A DNA stretch of 64,000 nt from Takakia lepidozioides. Lineage: Eukaryota; Plantae; Bryophyta. The stretch covers positions 44,764,001 through 44,828,000 of the forward strand of contig CM060734.1 in the NCBI GenBank assembly GCA_030704615.1, given 5' to 3'. Of the stretch, positions 4,328-48,600 are shown piece after piece. The notes below the pieces were generated by a model, which had not been told where the DNA came from, did no database searches, and saw only the letters and a program-made list of their open reading frames with translations. The position numbers and the translations under genes are program-made. Position 1 is the first letter of the stretch. Every line of letters begins with the position of its first letter.

Positions 4328-6515
4328 TCACAAGTAATCACCACAAGAACAAATCTCATCTTCAAAGTGGTGGAAAGTAGTTAGCGTCCCATACAACAAT
4401 TGCTCGGCCAACAATCTTTGAGATGAATTTGGTGGAGGTGTGGCAGTCTCCACACACTCGAAGATTCTTGATGAGTCGTGCTGAGCAGCCCAAAACCAAT
4501 GGCCAGCTTCTTACTGTGGTGGCTAAGAGAAAATTCCTTTCCTCCACATCATGCAATAAAAAAAAGTCGTGGCATCCTGTTCATCCCACTTGAGGATAGA
4601 TGTTGCCACACATTCAGCCATCTCCACATTGCCATGGATTCTGCAGGCACCAAGCAAGGCCTTCCACACCACAACATCTGGATTGATTGGCATTTTATTA
4701 ATCAGGTCCACTGCCTCATCTAGTTGGCCCGCATGTCCAAGAAGGTCCACCATGCAGCCAAAGTGCTTTACTATCAGATTGATACCATGATCTTCACTCA
4801 GGGATCGAAGTAGCATCTTCCTTCATTCAGTAGGTCAGTGTGGCTGCACGCAGAGAGAGCAAAAGATGCGGAAGCATTCAACATAATGCCTCAACGATCT
4901 TGATCACGTGGAATATAATGTTGGCAGGATTTACCAAGCATGGGTGTGCAACCATGCACCTCTTTGCCCTTTTCCAGGGCTGCCAAGCTTGCACACGCAC
5001 TGCAAACGCACACAAACGTGATGTGGTCGCGGTTCACCCCTTCCCCCATCATTTGCTCATGAATAGGTCTCCAAGTCCTCCATCCCACGCCCTGTTGTGC
5101 ATATCCTGCAAGCATCACATTCCACGACAACAACGTTCAGCCATATTGTTGAACACTCCCTCTGCATCCTCAATGCTCCCACATTTGGCAGTGTTATGGG
5201 CTCACCACTCAACCTGTTCAAGGCAGTTTCTTCACCGCCACCAAAGCCAAACACAATAGGCTCATGTCTAGGGCAGTGTTCAGGATCACACCTGCAGTTC
5301 CAGCTTTGGCGATGCAACCATGCACCTCTTTGCCCTTTTCCAGGGCTGCCAGGCTTGCACACGCATTGCAAACGCACACAAATGTGATGTGGTCGGGCTT
5401 CACCCCTTCCCCCATCATTTGCTCATAGGTCTCCAAAGCCTCCATCCCACGCCCCTGCTGTGCATACCCTGCAAGCATCGCGTTCCACGACACCACATCT
5501 TGTTTAGCCATTTGAAAACTCCCTTCGCATCCTTCATGCACCCACATTTGGCATACATGTCCACCAAGGCAGTGTTCAGGATGACATCTGGTACAAATCC
5601 AGCTTTGACAATGTCACCATGGACCTCTTTCCCCTTTTCCAGAGCTCCTAGGCTTGCACACGCATTGCAAACACAAACAAATGTGTTGCGGTTGGGCTTC
5701 ACCCCTTCGCACATCAATTGCTCATAGGTCTCCAAAGCCTCCATCCCGCATCCTTGCTGTGCGTATCCTGCAATCATCGCACTCCACGACACCACATCTC
5801 ATTCAACCATACTGTCGAACACTCGATGCACTCACATTTGACATACATGTCCAGCAGGGCAGTGTTCAGAATGACATCGGGTACAATTCCAGATTTGACG
5901 ATGTCACCATGAACCTCTTTGCACCTTTCTAAGGCTGCCGGGCTTGCACATGCATTGCCAATGCAAACAAACGTTATGCGGTTGGGCTTCACCCCTTCGC
6001 ACATCATTTGCTCAGAGGTCTCCAAAGCCTCCATCCCGCGCCCTTGCTGTGCATATCCTGCAATCATCGCACTCCACGACACCACATCTCATTCAGCCAT
6101 ACTGTCAAACACTCCCTTCATACATGTCCATGAGGGTATTGTTCAGAAGGACACTTGGTACACTTGCAGCTCTGACAATGTCGCCATGGACCTCTTTCGC
6201 CCTTTTCCAAAGCTGCTAGGCTTGCACACGCATCGCAAATGCACACAAATGTGATGTGGTCGGGCTTCACCCCTTCCCCCATCATTTGATCATACATCTC
6301 CAAAGCCTTCATACCACGTTCTTGCTGTGCATACCCTGCAAGCATCGTCTTCCATGACACCACATCTCGTTCAGTCATAGTGTTGAAAACTCCCTTCGCG
6401 TCCTTAATGCACCCACATTTGGCATACATGTCCACCAGGGCAATGTTCAAAATGACATCTGGTACAATTCCAGCTTTGACGACGTCACCATGGACGTCTT
6501 ACCCCTTTTCAAGAG
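4328..6515 (-). pseudogene. PLS-class PPR protein with E/DYW domains (C-to-U RNA-editing factor type), 5'-truncated pseudogene
   Basis: Repeated P-L-S motifs of ~303 nt (VVSWSAMIAGYAQQG, PNRITFVCVCNACASLAALEKGKEVH, NTALVDMYAKCG); E region HFGCMVDLLGHAG..VWKALLGACRIHG; DYW remnants HSKKLAIGFGL, KNLRVCGDCHTSTKFISKI, HHFEDEICSCGDYL*. Many frameshifts and deletions. Confidence 0.93.
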
Positions 6516-10700: not shown

Positions 10701-11237
10701 TTCATCTCCTCTACCAGTGCGTTGTACATTATGTCCGCCCATTCTACCTCTTCTCCTCTCAGGGCTTTGAGTATTTCCTCTGTGAAGGATCTGCTCAAAT
10801 ACTGTTGGTTCTGTTTCATGGCAAACAGAACGTTCAATACCTGGCCTACCTCCTTTAGCCCTGGGTACACGGCCTTGGTACAAGCATAACCTGAGTTTTA
10901 AAGAAACTCCCTTCTTGGAATAAGTCCCCTATTTGCAGTCTTGCCCTGTGCTCCTCCACATGCACCTGGCCTGCTGGCAATCGAAACAATTGCTGTAGGT
11001 ATAGGGGAGTAATTACTAATTCAACTCCCTTCACCGTTGTTGCTCATGTCCTTGGCTCAAAGTTCTGCAAGAATTGTAACATGTACTGTCTATGGTGCAA
11101 TGTCCAATCTTTGCTTTGCAATCCTTGCAATCTCAGCTCCTTCAGTATTGTATCGCCTGTGGGGTAGCAATCGTTTGTTTCTGCAGAATTGTGGTGCTCT
11201 TCACCCTGATTTCCTCCATTCCTCTCACTCTCTTCAT
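7720..11237 (-). pseudogene. Extra (env-position) ORF of the retrotransposon: plant-transposon-protein-like N-terminal domain, coiled coil and unknown C-terminal domain; about 5 lesions
   Basis: ORF pieces 11142-11915, an unlisted frame at about 10895-11145, 9731-10870, 8248-9837 and 7720-8241 join by single frameshifts or in-frame stops. Motifs LQFLQNF..TVKGVELVITPLYLQQLFRLP and ALRGEEVEWADIMYNAL. Confidence 0.72.
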
Positions 11238-11939
11238 TCTAGACCCACAGAAATGTTTTGGCTGTAACAATTGAAGAAATGCCTGTAGTGCACAAAGCAT
11301 AAACGTATGGTTGCCACAAAAAGCTATGGGTAATTTCTTGTGCGGGGCTTGCAAGCATCGCTCAAGAGAAAAGATCCGCTCTGTTGTTTCGTCCCTATGC
11401 CACTGCGTAAGTAATATTGCGAGCGTATAGTCTGTTAGTTCCTCCATAGCTTCAAAGCTATAGCATTGATGGTTTGTCCCGTCGAGACGCCCGTTACTCA
11501 GAACGACGCCGACTCTTGCGCTTAATTTCCCTCCAATTTCTTGATCCCTTCTCTGGCTTTCTATTGGCTGTAACCGCTGTGACTGGATTTTAGATTTAAT
11601 TTTCTTTAGTGGACTTTCCCTGCTGGACTGTCCACTAGGATAACACATGTGACAAGAATTTCGCTTTTCTGTACTTGCCGTTTGTTCTGTTGCTCCTTTT
11701 CTGTATTCATTAATGGGCCCGCCATTCATCCAATTTGACGCACTGATTAGGTATTTTGACGGCCATTCTTGTCCCCTTTCTTGATGACATCCGTTCTTGC
11801 ACTTCCTTCTCAGCTGTGTGTTGCGCCTTGACTTCCACGTGTCCCTTTGTAAACTGGCTTCCGTCCTTTCTTCTGCCGGCCATTTTACTGAAGTTATCAT
11901 GCGTCCACCTGTCACTGATTCTATGGATTGTGTAACCCT

Positions 11940-12152
11940 AGTAGGCTGTGTTAAGCTGTGATAGGTTGTGTCATACTGTGGTATGTCGTGATAGGCTGTG
12001 ATACACTGTGGTAAGCTGTGATAGGCTGTGACACGCTGTGGTAGGTCGTGATAGGCTGTGTTGCGCCGTGCTGGGTGTGATATGCTGTGTTACGTCGTGA
12101 TGGGCTGTGATAGGCTGTGTCACGTCGTGATGGGCTGTGATAGGCTGTGTCG
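11940..12152. repeat. GATAGGCTGTG-type tandem array between pol and the extra ORF
   Basis: ~30-bp higher-order unit of GCTGTG motifs, with the same core and orientation as the LTR array. Confidence 0.85.
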
Positions 12153-15100
12153 CGCCTGTTCTGTCCGCCCTGGTCATATATGCTCGGCCTAGCGACAAGT
12201 GCTCCATACTCCGTTGGTAACACTGGCGCAGCCCGTGACTGCTTTGCGTTTCAACATGCAAATCATGCTGCAATGGTTTGTCATGGATACCACTGTACCC
12301 CTTCAACTTATTAGCATTGACTCTTCCCAGCATCTCTTTGTTAATGGTTTGTAACATGGCGGTGTTGTTATCATACATCTTTTGTATGACATAAGGTCCT
12401 TTCCATGGTGATTTAAGCTTAGAAGCTTTAATCTTTCCCTTCTTCTGCAACCATAGAACCAAATCTCCCGTCTTAAAAGTCTTTAACTTGCCTTCATCAA
12501 ACTGTTCCTTCCTCTTCATCTGAATTCTGGTCATATTATCAGCTGCATCAGCACGTACTTCTTCCACATGGTATAATTCATGTTTCCTGACTTTAATGGA
12601 ATCTTGCAATTCCATTCTCTTTCCCCATTCCGTTCTCATGGTAGGTAACAGGAATTCCACTGGAAGTAAGGCTTCCATACCATAAACTAATTGGAATGGT
12701 GTATACTTAGTGGTGACTTTATATGAAGTCTGTATGACCACAAAGCTGTCAGCAGCTTTGTATCCCAATCCGTTCTGTTTGCATTGACTATCTTAGCCAA
12801 GATAGTACATAGTATTTTGTTGGTAGCCTCTGCCTGCCCATTACCCTGTGGGTAATATGTTGTACTCTTCCTATGCACAATCATGAACTCTTTAGTCAAC
12901 AATTCAATGGTCTCATTAATGAAGTGACTTCCTTGATCACTGATAAATTCCAAGGGACAGCCAAATCGTGTAAGTATGTTCTCATACAGAAACCTTGCTG
13001 TGGACTTGGCTGTGTTGTCCCTCAAAGCTTTAGCTTCCACCCACTTCGTAGTATAATCAGTGGCTGTAATTATGTACCTGTTCTGTGTATTCTTGGCTGG
13101 TGGGTTAATTGGTCCAACAAAGTCTAGTCCCCATTTCTGAAATGGTTCCGTAGGCATTGTAGGATGCAAAGACATTTTCCCAGATCTCTGCAAAGGTCCA
13201 GCCTCTGACATTCATCACAACTCTGACAATACTTGTGTACATCTTTGAACAAAGTAGGCCACCAGTAACCTGCATGTAGTATTTTCCTGCTGGTAGTCTC
13301 TTCTCCAAAATGACCTCCTGCCACTCCTTTATGAACTTCCTCCAAAACTTTATTAACTTCATGGTGGTATAAGCATCGTTTCAGCACTCCATCTGGTCCT
13401 AGCTTATACATTCTGCTCCCTACCATAGTGTAAGGTAGAGCCTTGATAGCAATTCTCTTTCTCTGCTCCTTTCCATAACTTGGTGGGCACTGACCATGAG
13501 CAAGGTAGTATCTGATTGGCCACTGCCAATCTAACCAGTCATCTGCACTTCCTGCACCTCCACTGTAAATAGACTCGCATCTGGTAATTGATCATCTACT
13601 CCCGTGGCTGGTTCTCCTGTTGATAACCTTGACAAGTGATCCGCCACAAGATGCAGTCTCCCAGGCTTGTAAACAACCTCGAACTCAAACTCGTGCAAGA
13701 TTATTAACCATCTTGCTATTCTTCCGCTTATCAGAGGTTTGTTTACCAGGTATATCAGAGCCTGGTGATCCACATAGAACATAAACTTCTTGCCCAACAG
13801 GTAATGCCTGAATTTCTTCACTGCATAGATCATTGCCAATGCTTCTCTTTCCGTTGTGCTATAATTTCTTTCGGCATTGTTCATCAATCGGCTAGCATAG
13901 TACACAGGTGAATCTATCCTTCCTGTACATTTTGGGCTAACACCGCTCCTAGTGCTTCTCCAGAAGCATCACAGTGAACATGAANNNNNNNNNNNNNNNN
14001 NNNNNNNNNNNNNNNNNNNNNNNNNNNNNNNNNNNNNNNNNNNNNNNNNNNNNNNNNNNNNNNNNNNNNNNNNNNNNNNNNNNNNNNNNNNNNNNNNNNN
14101 NNNNNNNNNNNNNNNNNNNNNNNNNNNNNNNNNNNNNNNNNNNNNNNNNNNNNNNNNNNNNNNNNNNNNNNNNNNNNNNNNNNNNNNNNNNNNNNNNNNN
14201 NNNNNNNNNNNNNNNNNNNNNNNNNNNNNNNNNNNNNNNNNNNNNNNNNNNNNNNNNNNNNNNNNNNNNNNNNNNNNNNNNNNNNNNNNNNNNNNNNNNN
14301 NNNNNNNNNNNNNNNNNNNNNNNNNNNNNNNNNNNNNNNNNNNNNNNNNNNNNNNNNNNNNNNNNNNNNNNNNNNNNNNNNNNNNNNNNNNNNNNNNNNN
14401 NNNNNNNNNNNNNNNNNNNNNNNNNNNNNNNNNNNNNNNNNNNNNNNNNNNNNNNNNNNNNNNNNNNNNNNNNNNNNNNNNNNNTTCCTGGGATCCACAA
14501 GAAGTCCCTCTTACACACAATGGTGCCCAGAAGCACCCTGAGTTCACACAGAAAGTACACTTCTCTGGATTCAGGCCCAGACCTCTCATCCTGCATCTGG
14601 CCAGACATAAACTCCAATTTATGCAAGTGCTCATTCTTAGAGCTGTACACACTGAAATCATCCAAGAACACTGCATGAAATCATCCAGATACTCATGAAA
14701 GATTCACTTATCACTCTCTGAAAGGTCGCTGGTGCATTTACAAAAGTCAAAGGGCATGACTTGTATGCATAAGCACCCCAGTTTGTGATGGTGTTTGAAA
14801 GCTGTTTTCTTGGTCTCCTTCTGCCACTTGCACTGATTATAACCACTGAAGCCATCCATGAATGAGTACCATCTCATGGCCTGCCACAGTGTCTCGACTG
14901 CTTCTGTGAATGGCAAAGGGAAAGGATTTTTCTTGACAAGCATTCAGCTTCTTGTAGTTCACACAAACTCTTAGTTTACCATCTGGGGGGAACTATCACA
15001 ATGGGTGACACCCAAGTTGTATATTCTATTGGGTATATAAACTTAGCCTCAGCCAACTTCTTGATCTCTTCTAGTGGATTCATCTGTACCTGCCTGCTTG

Positions 15101-24830: not shown

Positions 24831-27800
24831 GCCTCTCATTTTAAGATAATAGGGTCTTCAATGGGCACGTCGTTGGCCGGTGGGCGCCGGTGGGCCCCGT
24901 GCACGGACGCCCGCTCCCAGCACCACCCCCGCCCGTCGTCTGCTCGCGGTTGTCGCCCAGCCGCGGGCGCTTCTGCAGCAACCCGCGCCCACCGCCCGAC
25001 CCCCTTCCGCCACGCGGCCAGTCCCCCGCCCATGATGTCCGCTGCCCTCCAATTATGCCAGTCCGCTGTTGGCCAGTCTTTTGCCCAGCAGTGTACCAGT
25101 CCTCCATCTTTCCACCAGTCCGGTTCTGGCCAGTCCTCTGCCCAGCAGTTTGCCATTCCGCCGTAGTCCCCGCCAGTCCGCTGGCCAGTCCCCTGCCATC
25201 CCAGTCTGCTGACGCGCAGGATCGCCACCGGCCCCTTCCATTCCCCATAACCCATCCGAGCCCTCCATTTTTAGGGCTGCAATTCAAACCTGCATCCCTG
25301 CCTGCCGCCCTGCCTGCCACTTTGCTAACAGCCGCGAACGTGCGCACTGTTCTCCTGGCACGTTGTCGATCGTGTCTTGTACTACGGCGCGTTTCTTGCA
25401 TGTTCAGAAGCGTGTCCTTTGTACTGTATAGGGCATGGACGTGGAAGCAAAACCCGATGATATAACTGATCACGGAAAGCCGCTTATATGGCCTCTTCGA
25501 CAATGTTTGCAAACAGCAAAACCAGGACCCTTCAACAGGAAGGATCTCCATTGGAAGAGTGAGATGCAATATGGGTTTATGGGTGTGCGAGTGAATGTTG
25601 AAAAGGCCTGCATACCTTGGATAGAGTTGGTGACTTCGTCCTGGGAGAGGAGAGTTTGGAGGACTACCCCACTCAGTTTTGGGTGAATGTCCATTCTAAA
25701 GTGGAACCACGGCTCGCGAAAAGTACCCAGAGCCAACACATTTCTGTCCAGTATTATGTGTGCACCATCCTCAGTCCTTTTGACGTTTCATCATTGCATG
25801 TCTGTTGTCATTTTTTGTTTCACGAGTTCCTCTGATTTTATGCTTCCTCAAGTCGTTGGATATCGATTTTAGAATTTTTTGTCCAGGTATCAATGCTGCT
25901 ACGGTCCTGATGACAAGCGCACCAACAAGGCAATAGTGGAGGATCCAAAACAGAAGGACCTCTTGTGGGTGCTGGAACATCTTGCCCATAAAGGCCCAAG
26001 GAGAAAGAAGTCGGAGTATGGAGAGTCTTACAAACGTGGTTACCAATGCTGTTTCAAGGTCCAGCAATGCTATCTCGCCCCTGACATCTGTGTCCTCACG
26101 TACTACAACAACATGGAGCATACAGATGTGCAAGGGAAACCCTCGCATGGGAAGTCCGCAGAGTTCAGGAACACCCGCCACGCCTATGCACCACACATTA
26201 GCGAGGAATTGAAAGCCTGGGTCGTCGAGTGTTTGTGCCGAGGCCTGTCGGTCGCCCAAATCATGATGGAGCATAAAGAGCACGTGATGAACAACACCGG
26301 CTTGGGCAATGCATGGACCCGCGATGATTTCTTATTGGAGCAAGATGTTCGCAATCTTGCCGAGAAACGTGCGTGGCAAACCTTCAAAAAGCACGCCGAT
26401 GATGCAGAGAGTGTGCGCATGTGGAGAGACCAGAATCTTGCGTCCGTTTTTTTCTATCAAGAGGAGAAATTAGAGCCAACATTTGAGCATTTTGATGGAG
26501 ATTTGACATTCACTATTGGCATACAGACTCCATGGCAAAAACAACGAATGCTCGAACTAGGACATGACCGTATCGTTGCATGTGATGCAACCTTTGGGAC
26601 AAATCATGACAAGGTACTATTCGAATGATTCCATGGACTTGTACGAGCATGATAGCATAGTACCATGCAACATTCACATAATATTTGGTGTGCTGACCCT
26701 TTCTGTATGTTTAGGGTTGTGTACGTTGCGGAAGACCAAGAGGCAGACCCATTCTGAACCGCTACAGACCTCATCACTCTTATGAAGTCTTCTCGTGCAG
26801 AACTGAGCGGAATTTGCATGCTCTAACCATCTTACATTGTGCATTCCAACAGTTCCCGTTGTACACGTTGATGGTCTTCGACAAGTGGTTGAACGGTATA
26901 CCAGTTGCCTATATCCTATCCGCGAGGAATCGGACAAGAGACCTGGTTCCGTGGATGAGAGCCTTGCGCGATTCACTCCTCGCAGATTTGCCAAGCTGGC
27001 GACCCAATGCCTTAATTGTGGACGATGCCGAAGCAGAAATCAACGCTATTCGGTAAGTCTGTTGGTCCACAGCACCGGTCCATTGTCGAGGTCCACTTCA
27101 GCAGTCCATTGCTACAGTCCACTGGCAGACTCCTGTGGCAAAACCCGATGGCAGTTCGCTGGGCAAATCCACTGGTAGTCCGCTGTCAAGTCCGGTCATC
27201 AGTCCCTGGGGTCGGCCGTCCGCTGCCAAGTCCACTCGGCAGTCCCTGGCAAGTCCGCTCGGCAGTCCGCTGTGGCAGTCCAATGGGGCAGTCCGCTGAT
27301 GCAGTCCGCTGCCCCAGTCCTAGCTAGGGGAAGTCCAATGGGGAAGTCCACTGGGTAGTCCAATGGGGTTACTCCAGCACATCAACGTCATGACATTGTA
27401 CTGTCCACTGGCCGAGTCCAGTGGCTCTGCCCGCTGATACAGGTCGCTGTTACAGTCCACTCCGGCAGTCCACCATTGCAGTCCGATCCCAAGACTCTAA
27501 TGTGTACCATGTGTGTTGTGCAGAATTGTTTTTGAAGGAGTACTCATTTTCCTCTACCTTTGGCATGTCCGCAAGGCATGGGTGAAGCAATCATGCAAGA
27601 AAACGAAGGATCCGGTGACCGCTGTAAACTTGTTGAAGGATATGGGAGACCTCATGTACTTTAGAGGGGGACCACGCAACGAGAAAAGAGCGCTTCGGTG
27701 GGTTGTAAGGAGAATCCGTCGTATGAGGTCAAAATACCCGAAAGGACATGAATTTCTTGACTATATCGAACAGTACTGGAAGCCCAAAATAACAATGTGG

Positions 27801-27912
27801 TGTACAGCAGCCCGCCATGTCCCTCATGCGAGCCAAGACACAAACGCAAGCATTGAGGCATACCATGGAAATTAGTGCCCATTGAAGACCCTATTATCTT
27901 AAAATGAGAGGC
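24831..27912 (+). mobile_element. Mutator-like (MULE) DNA transposon, internally deleted
   Basis: Perfect 38-bp TIRs (GCCTCTCATTTTAAGATAATAGGGTCTTCAATGGGCAC; 24831-24868 and 27875-27912) and 10-bp TSD GTGCTATATC (24821-24830, 27913-27922). Confidence 0.95.
25435..27875 (+). pseudogene. MULE DDE transposase, spliced, C-terminally truncated
   Basis: Exons at about 25435-25760, 25887-26613, 26853-27052 and 27524-27875 with GT-AG introns. Motifs ACDATFGTN, FPLYTLMVFD..GIPVAY, IVDDA, LYLWHV (CxxH Cys lost), TNASIEAYH. Confidence 0.88.
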
Positions 27913-30179: not shown

Positions 30180-33102
30180 TCAGCTGCTTGATCCTGCCAT
30201 GGCAGTAGTGTATTCTGCTTTCTTGCGGTGCAGGATATCCTCAAGTTTACCTAGCAATCTCTGCTCCCATTGTCCAATTGTTACCAGCCTTGGTTAGTGG
30301 AGATATATAATTCCAGAGAGTATAGATATAGAAACATTAAGTTAAATTTGAATTTACAAAATGCAACTAGAGTAGAACTAGGCCACCAGAGGGTAGCTCG
30401 GTTGGATAGAGCACTGAGTGCCACCGAGGTGATTCTGGGTTCAAATCCTGCTATCTTGTCGGGTGTGGTATGGTCTTCTCCAGGTGTCCCTTGAGCCTTG
30501 TGATGGGCCCCTCATGGCGAGGGTACTGGAAAAGAGGTTATTTCTCCTCTCAATATAATTAAGTGCCTGAATTGTGCCGGGTCGCTCCCTGGTGTATCCT
30601 TTTAAAATAAAAATAAATAAAATATTTCCAAAGTAATATAAAGAAAAGCATATGTGTGCCCTACACATCCCCAAGCTTCGGCAAGCCCAGGAAAATCAAA
30701 GAGCACTCATGAGGGTCAACAAGAAACTACCCCTTGAGAGGACCACATCAAACAAAAGGCTGAAGTGCTAGAATATACCGAACACTTTGTTCTAAGACAC
30801 TAAGTATGGGAAGGAAAACTTATATACAACTTATATTTCCAGCTATACCAATATAGAATTGAAACCTGCAAGGTAGAAGCAAGACCTGTAACAAGCCAGG
30901 AACTATGCTGCATATCTCTGCAGACAACTCCCGGCAGAGGTACATCCTTTAGTCCAAGGGGAGGGTGGAACTACTAGTGCACCTATTAGGTACAATGTGC
31001 TTTGTGTCGGGCTTCCTTTTGAATAAGTCAAACTGATTGCTATTCTTGATAGGTCCTCATGATGTGCCTGCTTTGGAGCACCTGGCTTTCTAAATATGCC
31101 AATGGTTCTTGAGGGATTATTGGACCCAGATATTTTGGTCTCACGGCAGCAAGGAAGCTATGGTGTCTCCAGCCAGTCACACCACTTTTAAATAAACAAT
31201 AAAATCTAGCCTGTAGGCAGTGTCTAGGGGCAATTGGCCCATAAATCAATTTAGGCCTCACAAGGACCATTCCAAATTATTGAGCAATTTGCTTCAGTTT
31301 GGGAGAGGCCCATGTCATAGACCAGGATCAGGAAATCAAAGGTTTCAGCCGCATATTGTAAGCAATCTTGGGATAGAATTTCAGATAGAGTATATTATTT
31401 GGTTCTTCTTGAGACATGCATGTATTCCAAGAGCACTCCAAGATCCTTGAATGGACATTCAACAAACAGGACGAGTTCTTTGCAAAACACACAGCTCTCT
31501 CAGGGGCAGGTGCACAGGTTTCAAAACCCTAGTTTGTTTTGGGTTGCTTTGCCACTATCTAATTCAAACAACAAACTCCTTGCAAGAAGACCATGCCAAG
31601 ATTCTTCTGTACTTTACCAGGGCTCTTTGGCCTTCACCTGACCGGAACCGAAGTTTCTTTCTTCCTTTCTCTACTGTTCTCTGTTTGTGAGAGGCTACAG
31701 TGAGCAAAATGTAATGAGGACAAAATTTCTCTAGATAAAATGAGTGCTTGTGAGGGCACTAACCTTGAAGCTGTCACGGTTGATAGAGACAACCTTGCAC
31801 TTTGTGACAGCTGCCACTGTGGCAGCTCGGGGTTCATCATTGAGCAATGCCAATTCACCAAAATAGTCACCTCGACCGTATTTCATCACTACACTTCCTT
31901 TTGTTTTTGCCTCTGCCATCCCCTGCACATGTCATTATGCTCCCTTGTAGGCAGGAAGGGATGGCTGGTTCATTAGTGATGGATACCCAACTTTGGGTCA
32001 CATTTTAGCATCCTATCACCTTGTGATTGGTGCAAACTGGGCATATGCATATGGCTACAATAGAGACTTATTTAGTACATTTTCACTGATACTGATTGGT
32101 ACACATAATGCAAGGGATGCTGGGGTCTGACCTCTTCAAGAAAATAAAACTTATCTCCCGGCGTGCCCTCCAGAATAATATTCTTGCCCACTTCAAAATA
32201 CTCAGCTTCCAGCACATCTGCAATAGCTGATCGCTCGTACTTGTCCAGTGACTGCCACACATCCAAGGTTTTACAGCACCAAGTTGTCAAGATTGAAAGA
32301 TGGGATCGTAACCTTGATGAAGTAGAGGCTTTCCTAAATGTATACAATATACTAAATCTATTGACAAGGAAAGAAACAAGAAAACAGAGACAGGAGGAGG
32401 GAGGTATAGAGGGATCATTCTGAATGAGGTCTCTTCATCATGATGACATCCCTTGTTAGCAAACTGAAAAAACAGAGGAAAGGAGAAGGGACCTTCAGAA
32501 GGGGCACGTTCTCAAAAAACTCCTCATAGAGTGCCCTCTTTTGACTTGTGGATGTCATTAAAATTGCTCGAAAGGTGGAGCGGTCCATAGCCCAAAGTAC
32601 ACAATCGGTGCTTGCCTGCACCCGTGTACACCCTAGCTTAGAATACAAAGATAACTATCTGAACTTCCACCTCCATAATTTGTTTATATTGGAACCTCAC
32701 CACACAAGAGAGAGTGTACTCACAAGAAGTTGACCCCACACCAGTTTGGGCGGACCAAGAGGGAACAGACATTGTTTGTATGTATAAGGGGCTCACTCCA
32801 GTACTTGGACTTACCTTGGTAAAAAGAAGCAAACCTTATATCGTCCATAGGGGACCACGAGGGCCCATGGGACAGGGTAGAAAAAACCAATGACTACTTC
32901 AGGTTACATCAGCTGTCGCCCTAAGATGAAGGGCCTCTAGTAGGTTAGCTGCAAGGCACTTCTAATCTTCAAGGCTGAAGGCCTCCAAAAGAAAGAAGAC
33001 ATTTTATTATGTCCGTGAGAGGCCCGAGAGAGAATGTACTCATAAGACGTTGTTTGCCGAAGCCTTATGGCCATAGACCCCGCACCCAATTTGGGTGGAA
33101 TG

Positions 33103-33145
<43 letters not shown>

Positions 33146-36100
33146 TACTCATAAGACGTTGTTTGCCGAAGCCTTATGGCCATAGACCCGGCACCCAGTT
33201 TGGGTGGAATGATCCTGGAGATGGAGAGAGAGAGAGAGAGAATGTACTCATAAGACGTTGTTTGCCGTAGCCTTGTGGCCATTGACCCCGCGCCCAGTTT
33301 CAGCCAAACACAAAGGGACAGAAACTACCTTTGTTAGGGGCTGACGCCGGTAGTATGACTCACATAAAAACAGACAATTGATCCGAGTTTTCCAGATATC
33401 CTCTAGAAATCCTTCAAAGTTCACACAAACATCAATATGACGTGTGTGATTTGCCCAATAACCAGACCCCAAAAGGAAGGGCCTGGGCCTTTTGCTCAGC
33501 CTTGAGATTTTCAAAGTTGGTGGAATTGAATAGGTTGTCTATTTGGTGAGATTACCCAGGACAATCAATCGGAAAGTGGATATTGTCTTCAGGTTGCCCA
33601 CACAACGGGCATTTGCAATAGCCTTTCCCGTGCATCTGCTTGCTGTTCAAAGGTAGGCTTGCCGCCCTGAGTTTAAATTTCAGTCTAGTGCCAAGAGTGG
33701 GTAAACCCCTGGAGGTCATCCATGATGGCCTTACCCATGTCAGGGATTGGAAAAAAAGTCCAGGGAAGTTTTCTGCCTAACTTCATTTTCATCAGACAAT
33801 TTCTTGGCATGGCGAAATCTAGTAGGGTCAAGATTGCAGACTTAGATTCAGATACTTGAAAATTTCTTATACCCTGGGATTTTGCCTATTTGACAGGGCG
33901 ATCCCGCTTCCAAGATATAGAGTCGTCTAACTTAGGATATCTGATATTAGTCATACGTTGCAGCTGACCTGACCATCAAACCTTGAGTTCATCTCGTCCG
34001 GAGCTTAAGGGAGGAATGCCAAACTCACCCCGAACAACCACATTGGCTGTTTTGGAGCTGTTTTAGAGCATGCTGTCATTCACTCCTTGAGCATCCCCAC
34101 TTGAATGGATTCTTGAGACTTATGGTACGTTCACATTTGTCAATAGCATCGTCAGGAAACCCCGTTTTCACTATCGCCGTTCAGACCTAACTAAGTGCCG
34201 TCGACGTGTCATTGTTGATCATCTGCGCTATCACCCAGAGTTATGGTGAGTGATAAACTAATGGCGGGGAGATAAAAAAATTCAGAATATGTAGATTCTC
34301 GGGCTTGTCTCCGTTGATAGGGTAACAATCCCAAATACGAACTAATAGCTTATCGGTGCTGCTTCGCTCCTCCAAGCTCCTGCTTCGTTGCTTCACTCCT
34401 CCGAGCTCACCTGCTTTGCATCGCAAACACTCATGATGGCGAATGCAAGCACAGATTTCAGCATCGATGGAAGGCACAAGAGAGGATATAGCTTGTAGAG
34501 GTGGAAGAGGGGGTGGACGAGGGAGAGGATGAGGAGGGGAAGGAGGGACCTCACGACTGCGAACTCCAAACTGGACTCAAGATGAAGTGATGGTATTGAT
34601 CGGTTGCAAGCACAAAAAGCATGTGGCTCAAAAGCAACTCATTGATCCATGGTGGTAAACGTTGATGTACTATACCTTTGCAGCCATAATTGTGTGTTGG
34701 CCTTCAACGACGAAGAATTTTGAATTGTTAATATCTTTCTGATGCCTTGGTTTCATCGCTCGTTCCTCGGCGCCAGATAGACGGGATGTTTTGTATCTAA
34801 AACCCGCAACTGGTACAGACAGGCTTTTACTTCATCTTTGTGATTAATATTCAACGGACGATACACCATGCTTCTTGGAGCTCCCCTCCGTCCAAAAATA
34901 GAACAAAACAGCAAAAGCGCTTCAAGCAATAACAAAAGCAAAGACCCAACGCAACGGCAGAATGCGTAAAAAATGGAACGTGTTGAATGGAGATTATATA
35001 TATATGACGCCTCCCGAATGAAGCGTAAATTATGGTGTCTCTTCACCCCTAAGGGCTACTACCTTCCCGCATGAAGGTGGACACCTTAGTGATACCAATT
35101 GGTGGTTGTGGTTCAACCACTTCCGAGGTGGTTTGTGCCCATTGCCACTGGGCTACTACTTGGTTGTCAAATAGTGATTATAAGTAGATTAGTGACTACC
35201 ATAAATGTACCGGCCACAATACCTCATATTCGGACATGTCTACACAAGACAAGGGACAAATTTCATTTACCTAGAGTGTTCAATGAAGATTGCTATGATG
35301 CCATTGAGGCATTCGGCGGGGGGGGGGGGGGCTACTAATCTTCCCTTGTACGTGAGAGGTTCACAATCACAAGGAGGTTTGGTTTATGTGCAACCGAGAG
35401 AAATAGAAGAAAATCACACCCCTGCGCATTCACATCAGTCCTTAATAGGATATCTGATTGGAAAAGACTTCATTCGTGAGCCAAGCACCAAGGTAATCAT
35501 AGAAGTTTGACCAAATGTGGTCATTCGTGATGACCTCTCATAGTCTATTGATGGCCACCAACCTCCAATCATTAACCTCGATGATGGACCTGATTTTATT
35601 TTAATACACCTGAGAGAAACAATGTTACGATTGCAAATGGCACTACAACAACTCCTGGAAGCACAAGGTGAGACAAAAAAGATCTTGTGTATTTCTGCCG
35701 GTAATTGAAGCCCGATAAGCAGAGCAAGATTATCGTGGACGCCATGGACCGAATTACTCCAGAAGATAGATATCGGCAAGGACAGAACCAATTCACAAGA
35801 CAAAACAACAAAAGAGCATCTCAAATATATCAAAGGAAAAGACAAGAAGGTCTATAGAATGAGCAAAATATGGTTTTTGTGTTGTCCAATATTAGCACTG
35901 CCATGTGTTATGCATTCATCAAGGATCAAACAAGATGCCTCCGCCAATCGACATTTCAGACTTTAACTTCGAAGACAATCACGACCCAAATGGAAAAGAC
36001 TAGCGATTCAACTAAAGACAAACATTGAAGACTCTATTGTAGACAATTTGTTGCAGGCTTCAATTGAAGGCAACCACTAAACTTAATAAAAAACAGTTCA

Positions 36101-39100
36101 ATCATTTATATAGCATTCGTAGTTACCATTTGAACAAATTTGTTTAGACAATGTGAAATCCATTTGAACGTTGACAAACTTGTATAGATTGTAATGTAGT
36201 GTAGAACATTGAATTCCGAACCTCTATTTCATAGCTAAACTCCGAAGCTTGACTTTGAAGCTTAACACTGAAACTCGATTTTGAAGATCAATTTTGAAAG
36301 CGAAACTCCTTTTTCGAAGTCATTTCTATCAGTGCTGTACTTGTCTTCTGTGTGGTCATGTCGTAACCCTTTACCTTGAGGGAAGGGGGTTGGGACACAG
36401 GAGGGGTTGTCCCTGTGGTGGGGGCAGTGGCAGCAGTAAGAGTGGGGCGGAACGACGTTTGAGTGCCGAAAGCACTCAAGAGGGCGGAGGTGCTTAGTAC
36501 GTGGAGCCCTCCAACCGGGTTGCAGTGGGGTGGTCGTAGCATGGTAGTCGTAGTGGGGGTGACGTATGACTCACCGCGGGGTTGAGGGCTTGTGGTGGGA
36601 GTTGTGGGGAGTCTTGGGGCTCACCACGGTCCATTGGGGCCGTGGTGGCCTGGGAGGGCCAAGACTCACCGTGACTCATCACAGGGAGTTGAGGTTCACG
36701 GTGGTGGTTCACCAAAAAGGACTTGGGCTATTTGTGAGATCCCCGCGAATGCCTATAAAAATACATATAGGGAGTAGTATCCCTGAGAACGGTGCAAGCC
36801 CATTAAACGACCGAAGGCTATTGAAACAAACAAACGAGCCGAAAAACAGCCGAGTGTGGGAGCTGTTCCGGACTACCTATAACCATATGGAATTTCCACT
36901 CGGCCCGCATAGTCGAGGGTTGCATGAGGAGCAAAGGGGGACCATTATGTCCCAGTGAGCAGCCAAAGTTCCAAAGTTGGTATGTGCGGCCAGTTTGAGA
37001 GTTAGACGCGCGCACCAAAACGAGTAACTATAACATGAAGGGGAGTTTACCAAAGTGAGGTGTACAACACGTGGTATTAGAGCTTGGATTTGAGTACGCG
37101 ATTGTCCTTGAGATCGGCCTCACCTTGGGGTCGGACAAAGCCAAGCAAAAGCGGAATGGCCCGAAAGCCGACGAACCTAGTGAGCCTGGTGGGGGCGACG
37201 TGACGTCGGAGCAGCATGGGGAAAGAGAGGAATATCTCGCGAGGATGATGCTTCCCAAGATCAAGAGCCACATGAGGAATCGGAGCCCGAGGATTTTGCT
37301 GAGCCGCCTCCAGACAATCAAATGTCCCAGATGCCATAGGCACTTTCGGAAAAATTGTTGGCTCAATTCGGTGGGACTTTGAAGGATGTGGTGAAGGCTG
37401 CCAATGCCACTTCCACAAAAGCAAAGTTCAACGTGAAACCAAGGAACCCGACACTTGTGAGGGTGTCCGGAATTGGAAAACGCTCAATATTTGGCTCCTG
37501 GAGTTGGAGCAGTATTTTCGGGCAGCCAAGTTGAGTGACGAGGACCGAGTGGAGGTGGCCCCCCAGGACTTCGCTTGTTTGACGGACGATCATGCTTCCA
37601 AGATATAGAGTCGATTAACTTATGATATCTGATATTCGTCATGCGTTGCAGCTGACCCCACCATCTGACCTGGAATTCATCTCATCGGGAGCTTAAGGAA
37701 GGGATGCCATACTCAGCACGAACAGCCACATTAGTTGTTTTGGAGCATGTTGACATGCACTCCTTGAGCACCCCCACTTGGATTCTACAGACTTAGCCTA
37801 GTTGGAATTATCAACCCACACTGCAGATGCGTAATCCAAGGCATGCCTAATAACACGGCAAAACATGGTTCGTTTTACTGCAGAGTTCATCCCTCTGTAG
37901 TGGAAAAATTTAGTGAGACTCAACGCTTTGCACTTGCCAGATTGAACAACTTTAGGAGAGAGAAAGAGAAGGTCAAAGAGACACCTTAACAGTAGCCGCA
38001 CGGGGAGCATCATACAGGAGGGCAAGCTCACCAAAGCTGTCACCTGCAGAGTAGTTCTTCACCATCTCTGGATCTTTGCCCTGGACCTTCTGTATCCATA
38101 CCTCACAAGACCCTGCCTGTTCACAATTCAATTTCCTGGTTAGGTTCATTCTACCCGTAGTTGGATGTCTGTTGCTAGCAGTAGAGAGAGTTAGGGGTTC
38201 TTATTAAAAGTATGTGTAAACAACTTTCCAATTATGTGATGTTGGCTACTTAGCCACCCATGATCATCCATTAAAGTGGACTGCTCAGTACCACTTGTAA
38301 AAGTGAACTCTGACAAATCATTTCCTAGACGTCTTTAGTGGTGATATAAGGTTCAAAATAGAAAAACTCTGAACACTTTCTTCACTATGGGAGCCCCTTA
38401 ACCTTGTATTTAGATATATGATAGAACATTGAACATGTAAACTAGGTGACCAACTATTCCCATTGGACGTAAGGTCAGTCAACAATCAGCACCCTGTCCT
38501 GACCATCATTTCCAGAGAACTAGATTGGGCTAGTGACAACAAGTTGTTGGATGCCTCCGGAAGAAAACAGAAGGAAATTCATAAGACTGCTTAGAACCAT
38601 TCCGGAACATAACTTAATGAGACGGCATGGACATAGATATCATTGAAACTATGGTTAAGCTAAGAGCACTGGCTACGGCTGGCAATTTCATGGCTGGCAA
38701 TTTCATATCTTCTTCCTACACGGATTTTCCTTTTGCTCCAGTGAGAGTCAGATTGGCTCCTTACATGGTTCATCACTTGGAACTCACTTGCCCCTGGATT
38801 TTGCAAAGATTTCTCCTTTCTGAATTACTCTCCCAAGCTTGCAGACAATATGCAACTGAAACCTATAAAGGTGTTGGTCACTATGGAGATGCCAGGCCTA
38901 ACTAGAACTTTCGAACCTGCACTCCCGCTTTAAGAGAACCTTGAGAGGTGGTTTGACTCCCCTCCCTGGGCTGGAGGGATTGATTTGGGGAGTGCTCTGC
39001 AGGTGCATTTTAATAATATACACCTTGGTTTCCTAGCTTGCTGGTGGCCCTGCTTCTGCTTGGTTTCAATTGTTATATGATTGCTAGCTGGTCCTCTTGG

Positions 39101-41972
39101 CTTTGACTTTTGCTTCCCATATCTGGATGCCTAGGGGTTCGTGTAACTGGGCTTTTCTTTGATCAGAACTCTTCCCCGGTCAGCTCTTCTGGTTGCTGAC
39201 CCTGCCTGTGGTAGTAATTCTTAGCTTGTCAAAATTTTGTTTTCTGAAGTATGTTTTGGGATGTTTCCCTTACCCCTACAAAAAACAAGAGAAGGTGACG
39301 GAGAGCACCTCGAGGAGGTAGAAGTTTAGACCAGATTCCCCTTGTTTGATTATAACATCGCCTTTTTTGTGCTTCTCTTCCTCGACTGCATCAATCACCT
39401 GTTTTGAGCAAGCTTCACCTAAAAGTTTATTAGCTTTGGAAGGATATACAAACAATGCACCTGTGTGGTACTTGAGGATCTTACGACTTTGTAAATGTTG
39501 TCTCTGGGGAGGAAAATTGAAAGGAATTGCACAATGCACTGCACAACAAGACCACATCTTGCAATGCTGATCACATGTACACATACAAAGACAATCTCTT
39601 TCTTTCTCTCTTGCTCTGGATGTTCTCTCCCCTTACACACAAAGGGCCATTGGTCACCTCAATTGGTTAAACTCTGAAGTCCTACAATGCTGCACGGCTG
39701 ATAGTATATTCTGTGTTCACTGGCTTTTCTGTTGGACGCCTAGGTCCATAGTGGTAACGTGTGTGACAGACACCACTTCACCAGACCTAACAACCCCTTC
39801 AAAATATTTTTCTTCCTTCCACATTAGATATATCTCAATAATTCATTTCAGAACTTTATTTCTGAGCTCTATAAAATCAATTACCGTGGCAGTCTGCTCC
39901 TTGTCTAGAGCTTTGAAGATATAACTTCTCTCCAATGCTTTCTGAATGCGGAATTTGGCTTCATTTGTCTTTGGGATCACCTGTAACCCGGGATTGTCAA
40001 GAAGGTTCAGGCCCAAGGCTATTAGTACGCCAATGCATTGTCTTGCAAAGCAAACACTGATTAGCAGTGAGAGAAAAACTGGTTTACTTGGGAATCATGG
40101 CCACGTTACCTTTTGTAAGAACATAATCCATCCTTCCACTTAACATGTACAAAGTATGTAAATCCTTCGCGCTTCAGGCGCTTTGCGGTCAACTATCGTA
40201 GATTAGCGATCGGCGACCAGCCGGTTATTTAACAAATTCATTCGGTACGCTCGAGGAAGTTATAAAGTAGGTGTACCCTGCTTCAGATTGAAACGAAACA
40301 ACTTAGGCGTCGCAGTGCATTCAAAGGTGATCGAGTTATGTGTACCGAGACTCTAAATAGGTTTCATAGGGTCTGAAAAGTTCCTCGTCAAGCCTCTGGA
40401 AAATATCTTGATGGATAAAAAAACATCAAGCAAACTAACTGTTTTTCCTCTTTAGTCGTAAATAAGGGCCCCGGGTTTGAAGTTGGTGTGAAGATTAGAG
40501 GGTGGTCTAGGAATTAAAAAGCGGGGGTTAGAGTATGCTACACCAGGAGTTAAATTAATAACTGCCATGGGGGTTTTAAAAAAAAAATGATAAGACCTAT
40601 TATATAGGGGATGGTTCATGTGCCATGGGGGAAGCAAGTGTCACCTAGGGGTGACATGTGTCCCAGGGCAACCTTCTAGAGGGGTCCCACCGCTGGACGG
40701 GTCGGGCGGGCTTCTAGAAGGTCCCATCGCCCTCTGAGGGTATATAAAGAGAGTCGGGCTCTCTTCCCCTGCGTCTTACTATTTATTCACTTATTACTTA
40801 CTAGTACATAGGGGCTCTGCACACGCAAGGCCCCAAAAAAAACGCAAACCATGACATGATAGATTAATAGAAGTAGAGCAAATGATGAATAAGCCCCCTT
40901 GGTGAGCATTTTCTTTCAAAGGGTGGCCAAGATAGTTGTTGCATGACATGATTTTGTTCATCTTTCTGTCCCTGCTCTTTCGTAATTGAAAGTGCCAACA
41001 CCTACCTTGGGGACATACTTTTCGTCGGTAAGAGCGCATTCAGCACTCACGCCTGTCCTTCGAAATGAAAGCGTGTGTTTTCGTTTTTCCCTGGCTAGCT
41101 GCAAATGCACCCGACACAAAACTTTATGATGGTCATCATCAGTAAAACAAAATACAAAATAAAAGTAGATGTTGGCATTTTGGCACTTAGCATTTGGTTA
41201 GAGAGAAATGAAATGAAATGAAATGGTGCTTTATAACGTCCGCATAAAGCTCATATAGCTTATGGGACAAAGTGGAAGAAAACATGAGAGAGGAAAGAAA
41301 ACTAGAGCCAAGAATAAAAACTATTGCTCGATTGATTGTCTAAGGGTGAAGGCCTTGTGCAGGTAAGCTACCAAGCATTTCTGATCCTCATAGTGGAAGA
41401 CTTTAGTGAGAGATTGGGGTCCGTGGAATAGACAGTGTCCAACGGATCTCGTAGTATAGAGGGCAATAGAAGAAGTGTTCTTCAGTTTCAATTTCCCGGT
41501 TGCGCCCTGTGCAAATTGGACATAGGCGAGGTTTTTCCATCTACCAATCTCTATCCGTAGGTTGTGGGAGCCCACCCTGAACCGTCCCAATGCCCTCAGG
41601 AGGGAAGGAGATAAGAAAGGAGTAGGAGATTCACAAGAAAGAGAGAAAGAGAGAGGAGCAGAAGATCACAGGAAGCCCATAGAGTCACATAAGAACAAAG
41701 AAGAAGGAAAATCTTCCTTGATTTGTGGTTGCTTCTGAGCATATCACCTTTCCTTATTATTTATTTTCTTATAGAAAGGTTGACTTCTGGCAAGCGTAAA
41801 CTACAGGTGTCTCGCAAAGGCCTACTCGTCGAAGGTGGACGGACACCTTCTCTGGTTGACTAGTCTATAGAAAGGGAAGAGAAGGGGGAAACGGAGCAAG
41901 TGAGAGGGAGAGTACTTGGTCCGGAGTCATGTTAGAAGCTCTTTTGGCCTTCACGCTACTAGAAGCTGCCAT
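30180..41972 (-). CDS. PKAR: cAMP-dependent protein kinase regulatory subunit (PKA-R), 9 exons, about 316 aa
   Basis: Exons 41916-41972, 41006-41098, 39885-39980, 39309-39398, 37985-38116, 32493-32615, 32132-32251, 31764-31922 and 30180-30260; all GT-AG, all phase 0, no stops. Inhibitor site RRTGVSAE; N3A-like IPKTNEAKFRIQKALERSYIFKALD; two cNMP cassettes FGELALLYDAPRAAT and FGELALLNDEPRAAT; C-helix RLLGKLEDILHRKKAEY. The first exon is less certain. Confidence 0.93.
30381..30623 (+). mobile_element. tRNA-derived SINE, copy 1 (in the last PKAR intron)
   Basis: A box TAGCTCGGTTGG (30394-30405), B box GGTTCAAATCC (30438-30448), A-rich tail; no complete cloverleaf. Confidence 0.78.
30690..31690 (-). 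repeat. Dispersed repeat, copy 1 (probable non-LTR element 3' region)
   Basis: TCTGAAATTCTATCCCAAGATTGC..GAAACC and GGTTTCAATT..TAGCTGG match 38820-38865 and 39060-39091 in the opposite orientation. Confidence 0.55.
33026..34125 (-). mobile_element. LINE 3' fragment with (TC)n tail plus two stacked extra 3' ends
   Basis: RLKFKLRAASLPLN..KCPLCGQPEDNIHF zinc motif; the terminal ~75-bp unit plus (GA)n occurs three times at 33026-33300. Confidence 0.82.
34240..34890 (-). pseudogene. ParB/Srx-like domain gene fragment (probably transposon-borne)
   Basis: VYRPLNINHKDEVKACL..HPVYLAP / frameshift / KPRHQKDINNSKFFVVEGQHTIMAAK followed by a GT donor; a downstream piece reads LVRIWDCYPINGDKPENLHIL. 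Confidence 0.45.
36359..37593 (+). mobile_element. Ty3-type 5' LTR (36359-37069), Met-tRNA PBS and gag fragment
   Basis: Termini TGTCGTA...TACAACA; TATAAAA at ~36754; PBS TGGTATTAGAGC at 37072-37083; gag-like KFNVKPRNP..IWLLELEQYF; cut by a LINE at ~37594. Confidence 0.78.
37594..37950 (-). mobile_element. LINE fragment, same family as 33026-34125
   Basis: 37594-37780 closely matches 33907-34105; VKRTMFCRVIRHALDYASAVW. Confidence 0.8.
38720..39270 (+). repeat. Dispersed repeat, copy 2
   Basis: Homologous to 30690-31690 (SELLSQACRQYATET versus SEILSQDCLQYAAET). Confidence 0.55.
41206..41600 (-). mobile_element. LINE 3' end (RTE-X/CR1-L2-like) with (CATTT)n tail
   Basis: RFRVGSHNLRIEIGRW motif followed by a degenerate CxxC..EH zinc finger; (AAATG)4 at 41206-41225. 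Confidence 0.8.
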
Positions 41973-42299
41973 CGGAGGAGAAGCGTCTGTGGACGTACTA
42001 CAACCTATGTTGGATCCTACTTTTCAGATCAAGCTGTTTTATTTGGCCCAACCTCTTCATGCACACTACTCTTTTGTCATCGCTTTTGACTAACAGAGAT
42101 TGTAAATTCATATGAACTCTTGTTGACAAAATTGATGACAAAAATCGTCCTCATTGTTCATGTGGGGGTGTTGCCTTTACACACAGACGACATATCACTC
42201 GTCCAATTGCTCTTGTCCACAAATCAACTAATATTTTCTATCTCCCTAGGTTGAAGGAATTTCCGCGACTTTTAAGGTTCTGCATCAATTCCTCTCTGC

Positions 42300-42555: not shown

Positions 42556-42669
42556 CTCCATATAATTACACTTTGTTTCATAAGTGTTAATTTCATAAAT
42601 CTCATATTTGTTAAATATTACCTTCTGTAGATGTTAATGTTGTTACTATTAGCCCCTTCATAACTGTTG

Positions 42670-45675: not shown

Positions 45676-48600
45676 AGAGAATGCACTCATGCGGTTCCCT
45701 GTGAATGTTGGCTTGCCATAGCCTTATGGCCATTGACCCTGTGAGAAACTAACCCTCCGGATCCTTTTGTGGGGTTCGCACTTCACACCCGCCAGAGAGG
45801 GAGAGAGAATGCAGATGTTGTTTGCTGTAGCCTGTGACCATAGACCCCATGCCGAGTTTGGGCAGAACGACAGGGAATGGACACTACCTTTGTGAGGGGC
45901 TCACTCCCGTAGTGGGACTTACCTTGGTATAAACAATTCTTCTGGGCTTTCCAGATTTCCTCTGGAAGTCCCTTCACACATGCATCAATCTGCTGTGTGT
46001 GAGCTGCCCAGCAATTAGACCCCTTTAGGCTCAGCCTCCAGATTTTGAAAGTTGGTGAATGAGGTGCGGGGACTATGTTCTTGATGGTCCTGAAGAGGGT
46101 CACTCTCCGATGAGAATACCCTGGACATTGTATCAGAAAATGGATATTGTCTTCAGGCCGCCCGCACATCGGGCATTGACAATCTCCCTTTTCTCTCTGC
46201 ATCTGTTTATTGTTCAATGGTAGACTCCATGCCCTGAGTTAAATTTCAGTCTAGCACCAAGGATAGAAAGGCCCTTCAGATCCTCCTTAGGTCCTCACCC
46301 ATGTCACAAACTGGAAACTAGTTTTATGCCTAACTTTGTTTTGTTTGAACATTCTTCGTGCTTCCAACATGGCCTTAGACACTTCAGCCTCCAAGTCAGC
46401 TTCATCTAGCAGGGTCAGTTCTTCCTGCCAAATATTCAGGTACTTGAAAATCTCCTCTTCCTTTTCCCCTCAGGACTTAGCCTGTTTAACAGGACGGTCT
46501 TGCTTCCAAGAAATAGAGTTGATCATCTTAGGGTATCTGGTATTAGGCATGCGATTCAGGTACTTGAAAATCTCCTCTACCTTTTCTCGTCAGGACTTGG
46601 CCTGTTTAACAGGACGGTCTTGCTTCCAAGAAATAGAGTCAATCCTCTTAGGGTATCTGATATTAGGCATGCAATTGAACTGACCCCACCATCTGACCTT
46701 GAACTCATCACGTCAAGAGCTCAAGGGTGGTACGCCGAACTTACCCTGAACAGCCACGTTAGCAGTTCTAGAGCACCGAAAGTTGAATGGATTCTAAAGT
46801 TTTAGCATGGTTGGAGTTGCCATCCCACACAGCAGATGTGTACGCCAAGGTAGGGCTAATAACGTTGCAAAGCATGGTCCTTTTAACTTCAGTATTAATT
46901 TGAGTGAGACCCAAAGCTTTGCGTTTAGCGGTTTGAACCACTTTTTGTATATTTGCAACTCGAGGAAAACACAACACCAAGATATGCACTGGTTGCACGT
47001 TAATCAACTCCTGAAGATTGGATGGGATATGCCCTAGGCCCGCAAAGTCATCAGCAAACATAGAGCTGTTAAGGTAGGGCATCACCCACCTTTGAATCCC
47101 AAATCCCTCGCTTTCCACATCCGCAAGGAGCTGATTAATGAAAACATTGAACAGCAGTGGGGAGAGGGTACAAGCTTGAGCTACACCTTGGTCAATGTCA
47201 AAGAAATTAGATTTCTGGCCACTCACCATAACACAAATAGAGTGACTTCCTTCTCTTTCGAATTGTAGAAGAAACCCTCTCCAGTTTGACTACCTCTCTC
47301 CCTCTAAGTGCGGAAACTTGAAAGACAAAGTGAGTTGCGTGCGTGTGTTGGGGATTGCCTCTAGAAGCATCGGATTCCCTGTCGCATGACTGTTACACAA
47401 ATGTCGCTCCCTTATTAGGTGTTCGCATACAGGTTGTGAACCATCCTCCGCATCTTTCCACTAACCCAGCAGACCACAGACGAACCACAGCCTGTTGCAC
47501 CATACAAGCCTTTTTGACATCCAGGAAGACAAAGGTGGGTTTTCCTCCTTTTTTCCTTCCCTCAATAGTCTGGCTTAGGGTAAAGATATGGCCAACGCAG
47601 CCACTTTTTCTCCCGAAGCCTGACCTTCATGGGAAACACTTCTTGTCTCCAAATCCATTTTCAATTTTCAATTTTCTTATTATCCTACAAATCAGCATGC
47701 CACCTTTGCAGAGAAGTGTAATGCCAAGGTAGTTCCCAGGCTCTTTATGTGTTTCCATTCTTATACAAATTGACAATGACACCCTCTCTCCAGCGAAAGA
47801 GTATCATTGCAGTCGTCCAAATAAAAGAGGAGGGCAAGGGCCTCTACCATAGAATTGGCACCATGCTTAATTAGCTCATTGACAATGCCATCATACCACT
47901 GGCTTTATAGCCCTTTAGATGTCCTATTGCTTCAGCAATCTCAGCAGACCGTTGTATCCCTTTGTGATATACTCCAATTCATCAGGGCTGTCTTGGATCA
48001 TAGGAACAGTGCTTTCTACTGTTTCCTTCCTTTCTTTGAAACCCCTCACTATTAGAGTTGGATTCACTGCCAAGAGTGTTGTAGTGCGTTTCAAAAGTTT
48101 TCACAATCTCAACCATAGAAGTCACCGCTGTTATTCCTTAAAGCATGTACTTGCTGACCATTTTTCAGCCTGTACAAACACTGTAAGGCCAACCAGAATC
48201 TTTAATACCATTGTGGTGGTTCAAGCTAATGTCATGCTGCAACTCTTCCCAATACATCTTTGATATTACAGCAGTTCTTCTTTCCTATGCACCTAGTTTG
48301 GGCTTTTTTGCAAGTCCTCTTCTTTTGACCTATTAAGCTTTTCCAGGCAATTGATAAGCTGCTTGCCGTGAAATTATCCTCATCCTCCCCAAAAAGCCCA
48401 ATGATGTCGTCCTGTTGTAGACCCTTGTCTACCTGGGCATTGAAGTCTCCCAACAAGACCATTTGGCCTTTGGTGCACAACTGAGCTTAGTTCCTGGGAG
48501 GCGTTATTAGGGTCGACACTAAGGGCTCCCTCTGTAGACATGTAGAACATCCCACAATGAGGTCCTCAGCCACCACGCCGCCCTTCAGATTCAGTCTCAA

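Follow-up and report, generated by a model that had tools for sequence, protein, structure and literature searches.

Gene structure and genomic setting

The window analysed here, a 64,000-nt stretch of Takakia lepidozioides DNA, carries a gene on its minus strand that spans 41972 down to 30180 and is divided into nine exons (Table 1). The exon boundaries were set by script after all frames had been read, and the joined model was assembled from the window coordinates, also by script. The joined frame runs through 316 codons to a TGA without a stop, with all nine exon lengths divisible by three and every junction in phase 0. All eight introns begin with GT and end with AG, leaving the 16 splice sites intact, and measure, from first to eighth, 817, 1025, 486, 1192, 5369, 241, 209 and 1503 nt. 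A stop codon lies in frame 18 codons upstream of the ATG. This rebuilt model reproduces the preliminary description of the DNA, which had read nine phase-0 GT-AG exons and an uninterrupted protein of about 316 residues. Each of exons 2 to 9 is 55-90% identical to the corresponding part of a Sphagnum protein and every exon adds to the similarity; exon 1, whose N-terminus aligns with Sphagnum MAAYSSAKGRKAT, is the weakest-conserved part of the model (7 of 19 residues identical). The Marchantia orthologue (locus L001) is likewise split into nine coding exons, and its eight introns fall at identical positions. Given this shared intron placement and the identity of exons 2 to 9 to Sphagnum, the gene model lies far beyond chance.

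Table 1 Coordinates of the gene, its motifs and other features in the window
Feature	Coordinates	Strand	Description
Exon 1	41916..41972	-	Start codon at 41972; 19 codons (MAASSSVKAKRASNMTPDQ); GT donor; KRAS motif
KRAS motif	41931..41945	-	N-terminal tail, exon 1
Intron 1 ORF fragment	41403..41540	-	Cys-rich C-terminal 'CPxCG...EDNIHF'
Exon 2	41006..41098	-	31 codons; linker with inhibitor (pseudosubstrate) site TLSFRRTGVSAE
RRTGV	41048..41062	-	Pseudosubstrate, exon 2
Exon 3	39885..39980	-	32 codons; N-terminal helices of domain A; 24/32 identical to Sphagnum
Exon 4	39309..39398	-	30 codons; first beta strands of domain A; Pfam cNMP_binding positions 2-23
Exon 5	37985..38116	-	44 codons; remaining domain A barrel, phosphate-binding cassette A
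Cassette A	37988..38035	-	FGELALLYDAPRAATV, exon 5
Intron 5	32616..37984	-	5369 nt, by far the longest; repeats, GA microsatellite, LINE-like zinc-knuckle ORF fragment
Intron 5 ORF fragment	33552..33719	-	Cys-rich C-terminal 'CPxCG...EDNIHF'
Repeat	32716..33500		Very high copy, intron 5
Microsatellite	~33000..33250		GA-type, intron 5
Exon 6	32493..32615	-	41 codons; B/C helix of domain A, joins both domains
Exon 7	32132..32251	-	40 codons; start of domain B; Tyr at RI-alpha capping-Trp position
Tyr of LDKYER	32237..32239	-	Candidate aromatic cap
Exon 8	31764..31922	-	53 codons; domain B barrel, phosphate-binding cassette B; Pfam cNMP_binding 45 bits
Cassette B	31815..31862	-	FGELALLNDEPRAATV, exon 8
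Repeat	30304..30571		Very high copy, intron 8
Exon 9	30180..30260	-	26 codons and TGA; C-terminal helix, candidate capping Tyr
Tyr of KKAEY	30210..30212	-	Candidate aromatic cap
PPR gene pieces	4840..6450	-	PLS-type pentatricopeptide repeats; PPR and PPR_2 matches on 5418..5795
Long ORFs	8248..10870		Adjoin LTR pol region; no Pfam match
LTR-retrotransposon pol region	11000..14700	-	Integrase core match 12690..13211; RNase H/RT-like ORFs
Assembly gap	13985..14484		Exactly 500 N
Long ORFs	25879..27875	+	'CDATFGTN' motif
LINE (non-LTR) fragment	45783..47229	-	Reverse transcriptase, RVT_1 match; upstream of the gene

In the DNA run the very high-copy repeats in introns 5 and 8 reach depths of thousands to hundreds of thousands (summed), and in the RNA-labelled runs depths of tens of thousands, against approximately 30 for unique sequence. 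Elsewhere in the window, the pieces of a PLS-type pentatricopeptide-repeat (PPR) gene consist of ORFs of approximately 110-135 residues with near-duplicate segments, and this gene has probably decayed. The assembly gap breaks the pol region of the LTR retrotransposon. The two Cys-rich ORF fragments, one in intron 5 and one in intron 1, are related to the LINE fragment upstream of the gene. The plus-strand long ORFs resemble MULE/FAR1-type transposases by their motif alone, with no Pfam match at E <= 0.01. The preliminary description also referred to decayed neighbouring genes. That remark comes down to transposons and to the broken PPR gene, the one decayed neighbour that we observed, at a distance of 24 kb; neither has a bearing on the nine-exon gene.

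Family assignment

Searches of Pfam, the PDB and the HMMER libraries were made with single exons. Pfam cNMP_binding matches were obtained with exons 4, 5, 6 and 8. Against solved structures the best matches of exons 5 and 8 were to apicomplexan and animal regulatory subunits (PKA-R) belonging to cAMP-dependent protein kinase, with PKG close behind. For exon 6 the best 26 matches were all PKA-R (best E 4e-9), compared with E 3e-3 for PKG, and for exon 7 the best match was RI-alpha (E 8e-13), compared with E 4e-4 for PKG. Exon 2 alone is too short and gave no match in the PDB.

As exons 5 and 8 taken alone match apicomplexan PKG well too, we considered whether the exons might form the regulatory portion of a PKG or PP2C-CNB-kinase gene, or stem from a contaminant that is not a plant. 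Both possibilities appear extremely unlikely. The stop codon follows directly after domain B, at the same end as in all moss orthologues, with no fused kinase, and the orthologues that we checked contain two cNMP_binding stretches and nothing else. The phylogeny described below also separates the protein from the kinase-fused families. A foreign origin of the contig, which the preliminary description had named as a possible objection, is contradicted by the PLS-type PPR repeats in the window, the position of the protein among the mosses, the liverwort-like gene structure with intron positions equal to those of Marchantia, and uniform DNA depth. In DNA contigs of the probable source sample, depth over the gene, examined across 29500-33500, is even at approximately 30 and equal to that of the unique sequence downstream, and the gene is therefore part of the main genome. 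We also observed a 240-nt contig from a 'plant metagenome' run (X5) that equals the 3' flank of the gene (29911-30150) with no mismatch, so the species seems to be present in that environmental sample.

Orthologues and phylogeny

Relatives of the PKA-R-like protein were collected with a full-library HMMER search using exon 8, followed by local BLAST of the joined model. The closest full-length matches to the joined model were two stand-alone proteins of 330-351 residues, from Riccia and Chara. When the Riccia protein was used in a word search, it returned orthologues in Riccia, Marchantia, Calypogeia, three Sphagnum species, Ceratodon (two loci) and Physcomitrium, and further orthologues in Selaginella, Adiantum, Ceratopteris, Ginkgo, Cryptomeria, Chara and prasinophyte algae. 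Several of these carry the name cAMP-dependent protein kinase regulatory subunit in NCBI or UniProt. In local BLAST the model is 80% identical to Sphagnum magellanicum CY35_08G137400 (P0156) over residues 1-308 and 74% identical to Ceratodon purpureus KC19_11G057800 and M758_8G098100. Identity is 70% to Physcomitrium patens P0166, named by NCBI 'cAMP-dependent protein kinase regulatory subunit isoform X2', and 64% by BLAST to the Marchantia protein P0152, or 61% of 316 residues in a global alignment.

We calculated a maximum likelihood tree with IQ-TREE from 57 sequences, of which 14 are kinase-fused proteins and the others stand-alone R-like proteins, either unnamed or from plants, algae and fungi; the long-branch rows P0136, P0143 and P0123 were left out. 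The window protein pairs with P0156 of Sphagnum magellanicum (95/81) and is nested successively within a moss clade (100/97), streptophyte PKA-R (97/98) and a green-plant clade (94/97). A split supported at 98/92 sets every stand-alone R protein apart from the kinase-fused ones. If the window protein is constrained to group with the latter, the log-likelihood falls by 56.5 units and the AU test rejects the arrangement (p-AU 0.007), and a grouping with PKG or PP2C-CNB-kinase proteins, another objection anticipated in the preliminary description, is thus not what the tree returns. The proposal that this land plant carries a PKA regulatory subunit therefore holds, given the moss clade within streptophyte PKA-R and the Ala-type cassettes described below. 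What had been overstated is its novelty: annotated orthologues already exist for Physcomitrium, Ceratodon, Sphagnum and a large number of further seed-free plants.

The mosses in the tree seem to have two PKA-R lineages, represented by P0156 versus P0157/P0181 in Sphagnum and by P0162 versus P0165 in Ceratodon. The pairing of the Takakia protein with just one of the two Sphagnum lineages, the chromosome-8 type, hints at two old moss paralogues, and a second PKA-R copy may be present elsewhere in this genome. We also noted that the PKA-R orthologue of Cryptomeria japonica (P0167) groups with that of Ginkgo (100/99). Cryptomeria is a conifer with non-motile sperm. Its possession of a PKA-R conflicts with a strict rule that the protein occurs only where sperm swim.

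Inhibitor site, cassettes and capping residues

The inhibitor site encoded by exon 2 has Gly at the phospho-acceptor position, making it type-I-like, and its RRTGV motif is followed by SAE as in RI-alpha. RRTGV is invariant among the mosses compared, and the alignment shows it also in liverworts and Chara. Both phosphate-binding cassettes read FGELALL..PRAATV, with the canonical Glu and Arg kept and Ala after the Arg. An Ala at this place marks selectivity for cAMP rather than cGMP. Two Tyr residues are candidate aromatic caps. The first lies in domain B, where SLDKYER aligns to SLDKWER of bovine RI-alpha, which contains the capping Trp. The second, in KKAEY, aligns Tyr-on-Tyr with RLLGPIEDILHRNVENY of Plasmodium PKA-R in a weak match (E 0.57). 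Conservation among the orthologues aligned extends to the inhibitor site, the two cassettes and the two candidate caps, and all of them, including the two PRAAT cassettes, LDKYER and KKAEY, lie where the preliminary description had placed them. From these residues we infer that the protein would bind cAMP and inhibit a kinase.

Some protist R subunits have been described with a changed job, having another ligand or no PKA catalytic subunit. The moss protein might likewise be R-like with a ligand other than cAMP, or act without a PKA catalytic subunit, and the absence of a dimerisation/docking domain could be read in that direction. We regard such a change as very unlikely, as both cassettes keep the canonical Glu, Arg and RAA of the cAMP type and as mosses and liverworts strictly conserve RRTGV, a constancy to be expected only where the protein binds a PKA-type kinase. 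Marchantia, moreover, possesses a PKA catalytic subunit gene, MpPKAC (PMC11032487).

The N-terminal tail also carries a KRAS motif, of the basic-basic-x-Ser, PKA-substrate type. Sphagnum has RKAT at this place and the liverworts have KAKSIS. It is possible, though speculative, that KRAS serves as an autophosphorylation site.

Absence of a dimerisation/docking domain

Only 32 residues precede the inhibitor site. A search for the RIIa domain gave no match in the Sphagnum, Marchantia and Physcomitrium orthologues, while a fungal control matched PF02197. Among the matches listed, the plant and green-algal orthologues have only PF00027, and PF02197 occurs in fungal proteins alone; we therefore take the docking domain to be lineage-variable and no bar to membership of the PKA-R family. 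We also considered an upstream exon encoding a docking domain. A three-frame reading of the minus strand across 41973-45800 contained nothing RIIa-like, and the N-termini of the orthologues are equally short.

Without this domain, the moss protein would probably form an R:C heterodimer that lacks AKAP-type anchoring, in place of an R2C2 tetramer. The words dimerisation, docking and AKAP are absent from the main text of the 2024 paper on plant PKA-R (PMC11032487), and we found no published account of the biochemistry of plant PKA-R, including cAMP affinity, the PKA-C partner and the stoichiometry of a docking-less subunit. A wider proposal, to which we would give a small chance, is that streptophyte PKA-R is in general a docking-domain-less, type-I-like monomeric inhibitor, with the gene staying intact and slowly evolving in this moss; if flagellar genes prove to decay here, cAMP-PKA signalling in mosses would reach beyond sperm motility.

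Constraint and expression

Constraint was gauged by relative branch length, in place of dN/dS. The terminal branch of the Takakia protein is 0.082, compared with 0.13 for its Sphagnum sister, and there is therefore no sign of relaxed constraint. Turning to expression, we observed no RNA contig over exons 6-9 in two small runs (X6 and X7; 29500-33500), whose tissue is unrecorded and whose designation as RNA is a guess. Within this interval the RNA-labelled runs cover only the two high-copy repeats. The first 1.5 kb upstream of the gene contains no DUO1-type MYB site (AACCGYC), and the whole window contains five such sites compared with 6.9 expected.

The lack of RNA contigs would be in keeping with a gene that is intact but silent, or only recently disabled, for instance in a rarely sexual lineage, and that has no pathway role left. 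We think this very unlikely, however, for a gene whose 316 codons contain neither a stop nor a frameshift and whose 16 splice sites are all intact, with a terminal branch shorter than that of its sister and with all functional motifs retained. The RNA runs are small and, because PKA-R in Marchantia is expressed almost only in antheridia, no contig is expected from another tissue. The missing RNA contigs are thus no evidence of silence, and an intact PKA-R gene without signs of relaxed constraint remains our preferred reading.

Proposed role in sperm

Plant PKA-R proteins were reported in 2024 from bryophytes, lycophytes, ferns, Ginkgo and charophytes, together with their monophyly and a role in the motility of liverwort sperm (PMC11032487). 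In Marchantia, MpPKAR1 and MpPKAR2 are expressed in the antheridium and almost nowhere else, and the double knock-out impairs sperm swimming (PMC11032487). The Marchantia enzyme CAPE both supplies and removes cAMP (PMC11032487), and its distribution has been described (PMC5159850, PMC8115329). Orthology to MpPKAR1/2 makes a role of the Takakia gene in sperm motility a reasonable proposal.

The following mechanism is modelled on the PKA-R family and on Marchantia. In the absence of cAMP the pseudosubstrate and domain A would keep the PKA catalytic subunit inactive. In spermatids or sperm, cAMP supplied by CAPE or another cyclase would bind both cassettes and free the kinase, which in turn may phosphorylate flagellar targets and so set the motility of the sperm. 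The gene is intact and belongs, as a moss member, to the bryophyte PKA regulatory subunits of the MpPKAR1/2 family. We regard this reading as a whole as very likely, with a product that is predicted to bind cAMP, to inhibit PKA-C and to contribute to sperm motility.

As a further orthologue in a published and widely annotated family, the gene is an ordinary find. It adds one moss lineage to the PKA-R family, which is of small discovery value; its value for annotation lies in the exact nine-exon model of a gene that ORF-based views miss.

Comparison with known regulatory subunits

The moss protein shares tandem cyclic-nucleotide-binding domains with PKG and with the PP2C-CNB-kinase proteins of plants and algae, and all belong to one superfamily. 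Unlike these proteins, it has no fused kinase or phosphatase and its cassettes carry RAA, not RTA. Identity to a fungal PKA-R control is 43-47%. The likeness to mammalian RI-alpha (PDB 1RGS, 2QCS) extends to a pseudosubstrate without a Ser acceptor, the RRxxxSAE context, the PRAATV cassettes and the aromatic cap that the first helix of domain B provides. In contrast to RI-alpha, however, the cap is Tyr instead of Trp, Gly replaces Ala at the acceptor position, and there is no RIIa domain.

Among plants, MpPKAR1 and MpPKAR2 of Marchantia share with the Takakia protein a short N-terminus, the FRRTGVS inhibitor site, two cAMP-type domains, nine exons and a place in the streptophyte PKA-R clade. 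The liverwort protein differs in its N-terminal tail and in its C-terminal tail, which exceeds that of the moss protein by approximately 20-30 residues, and knock-out has shown its function in sperm motility, a role that is predicted for the moss gene. The moss orthologues have the same start and the same end as the Takakia protein and are similar along the whole length (70-80%); they come from different species, and identity to the closest of them is 80% at best.
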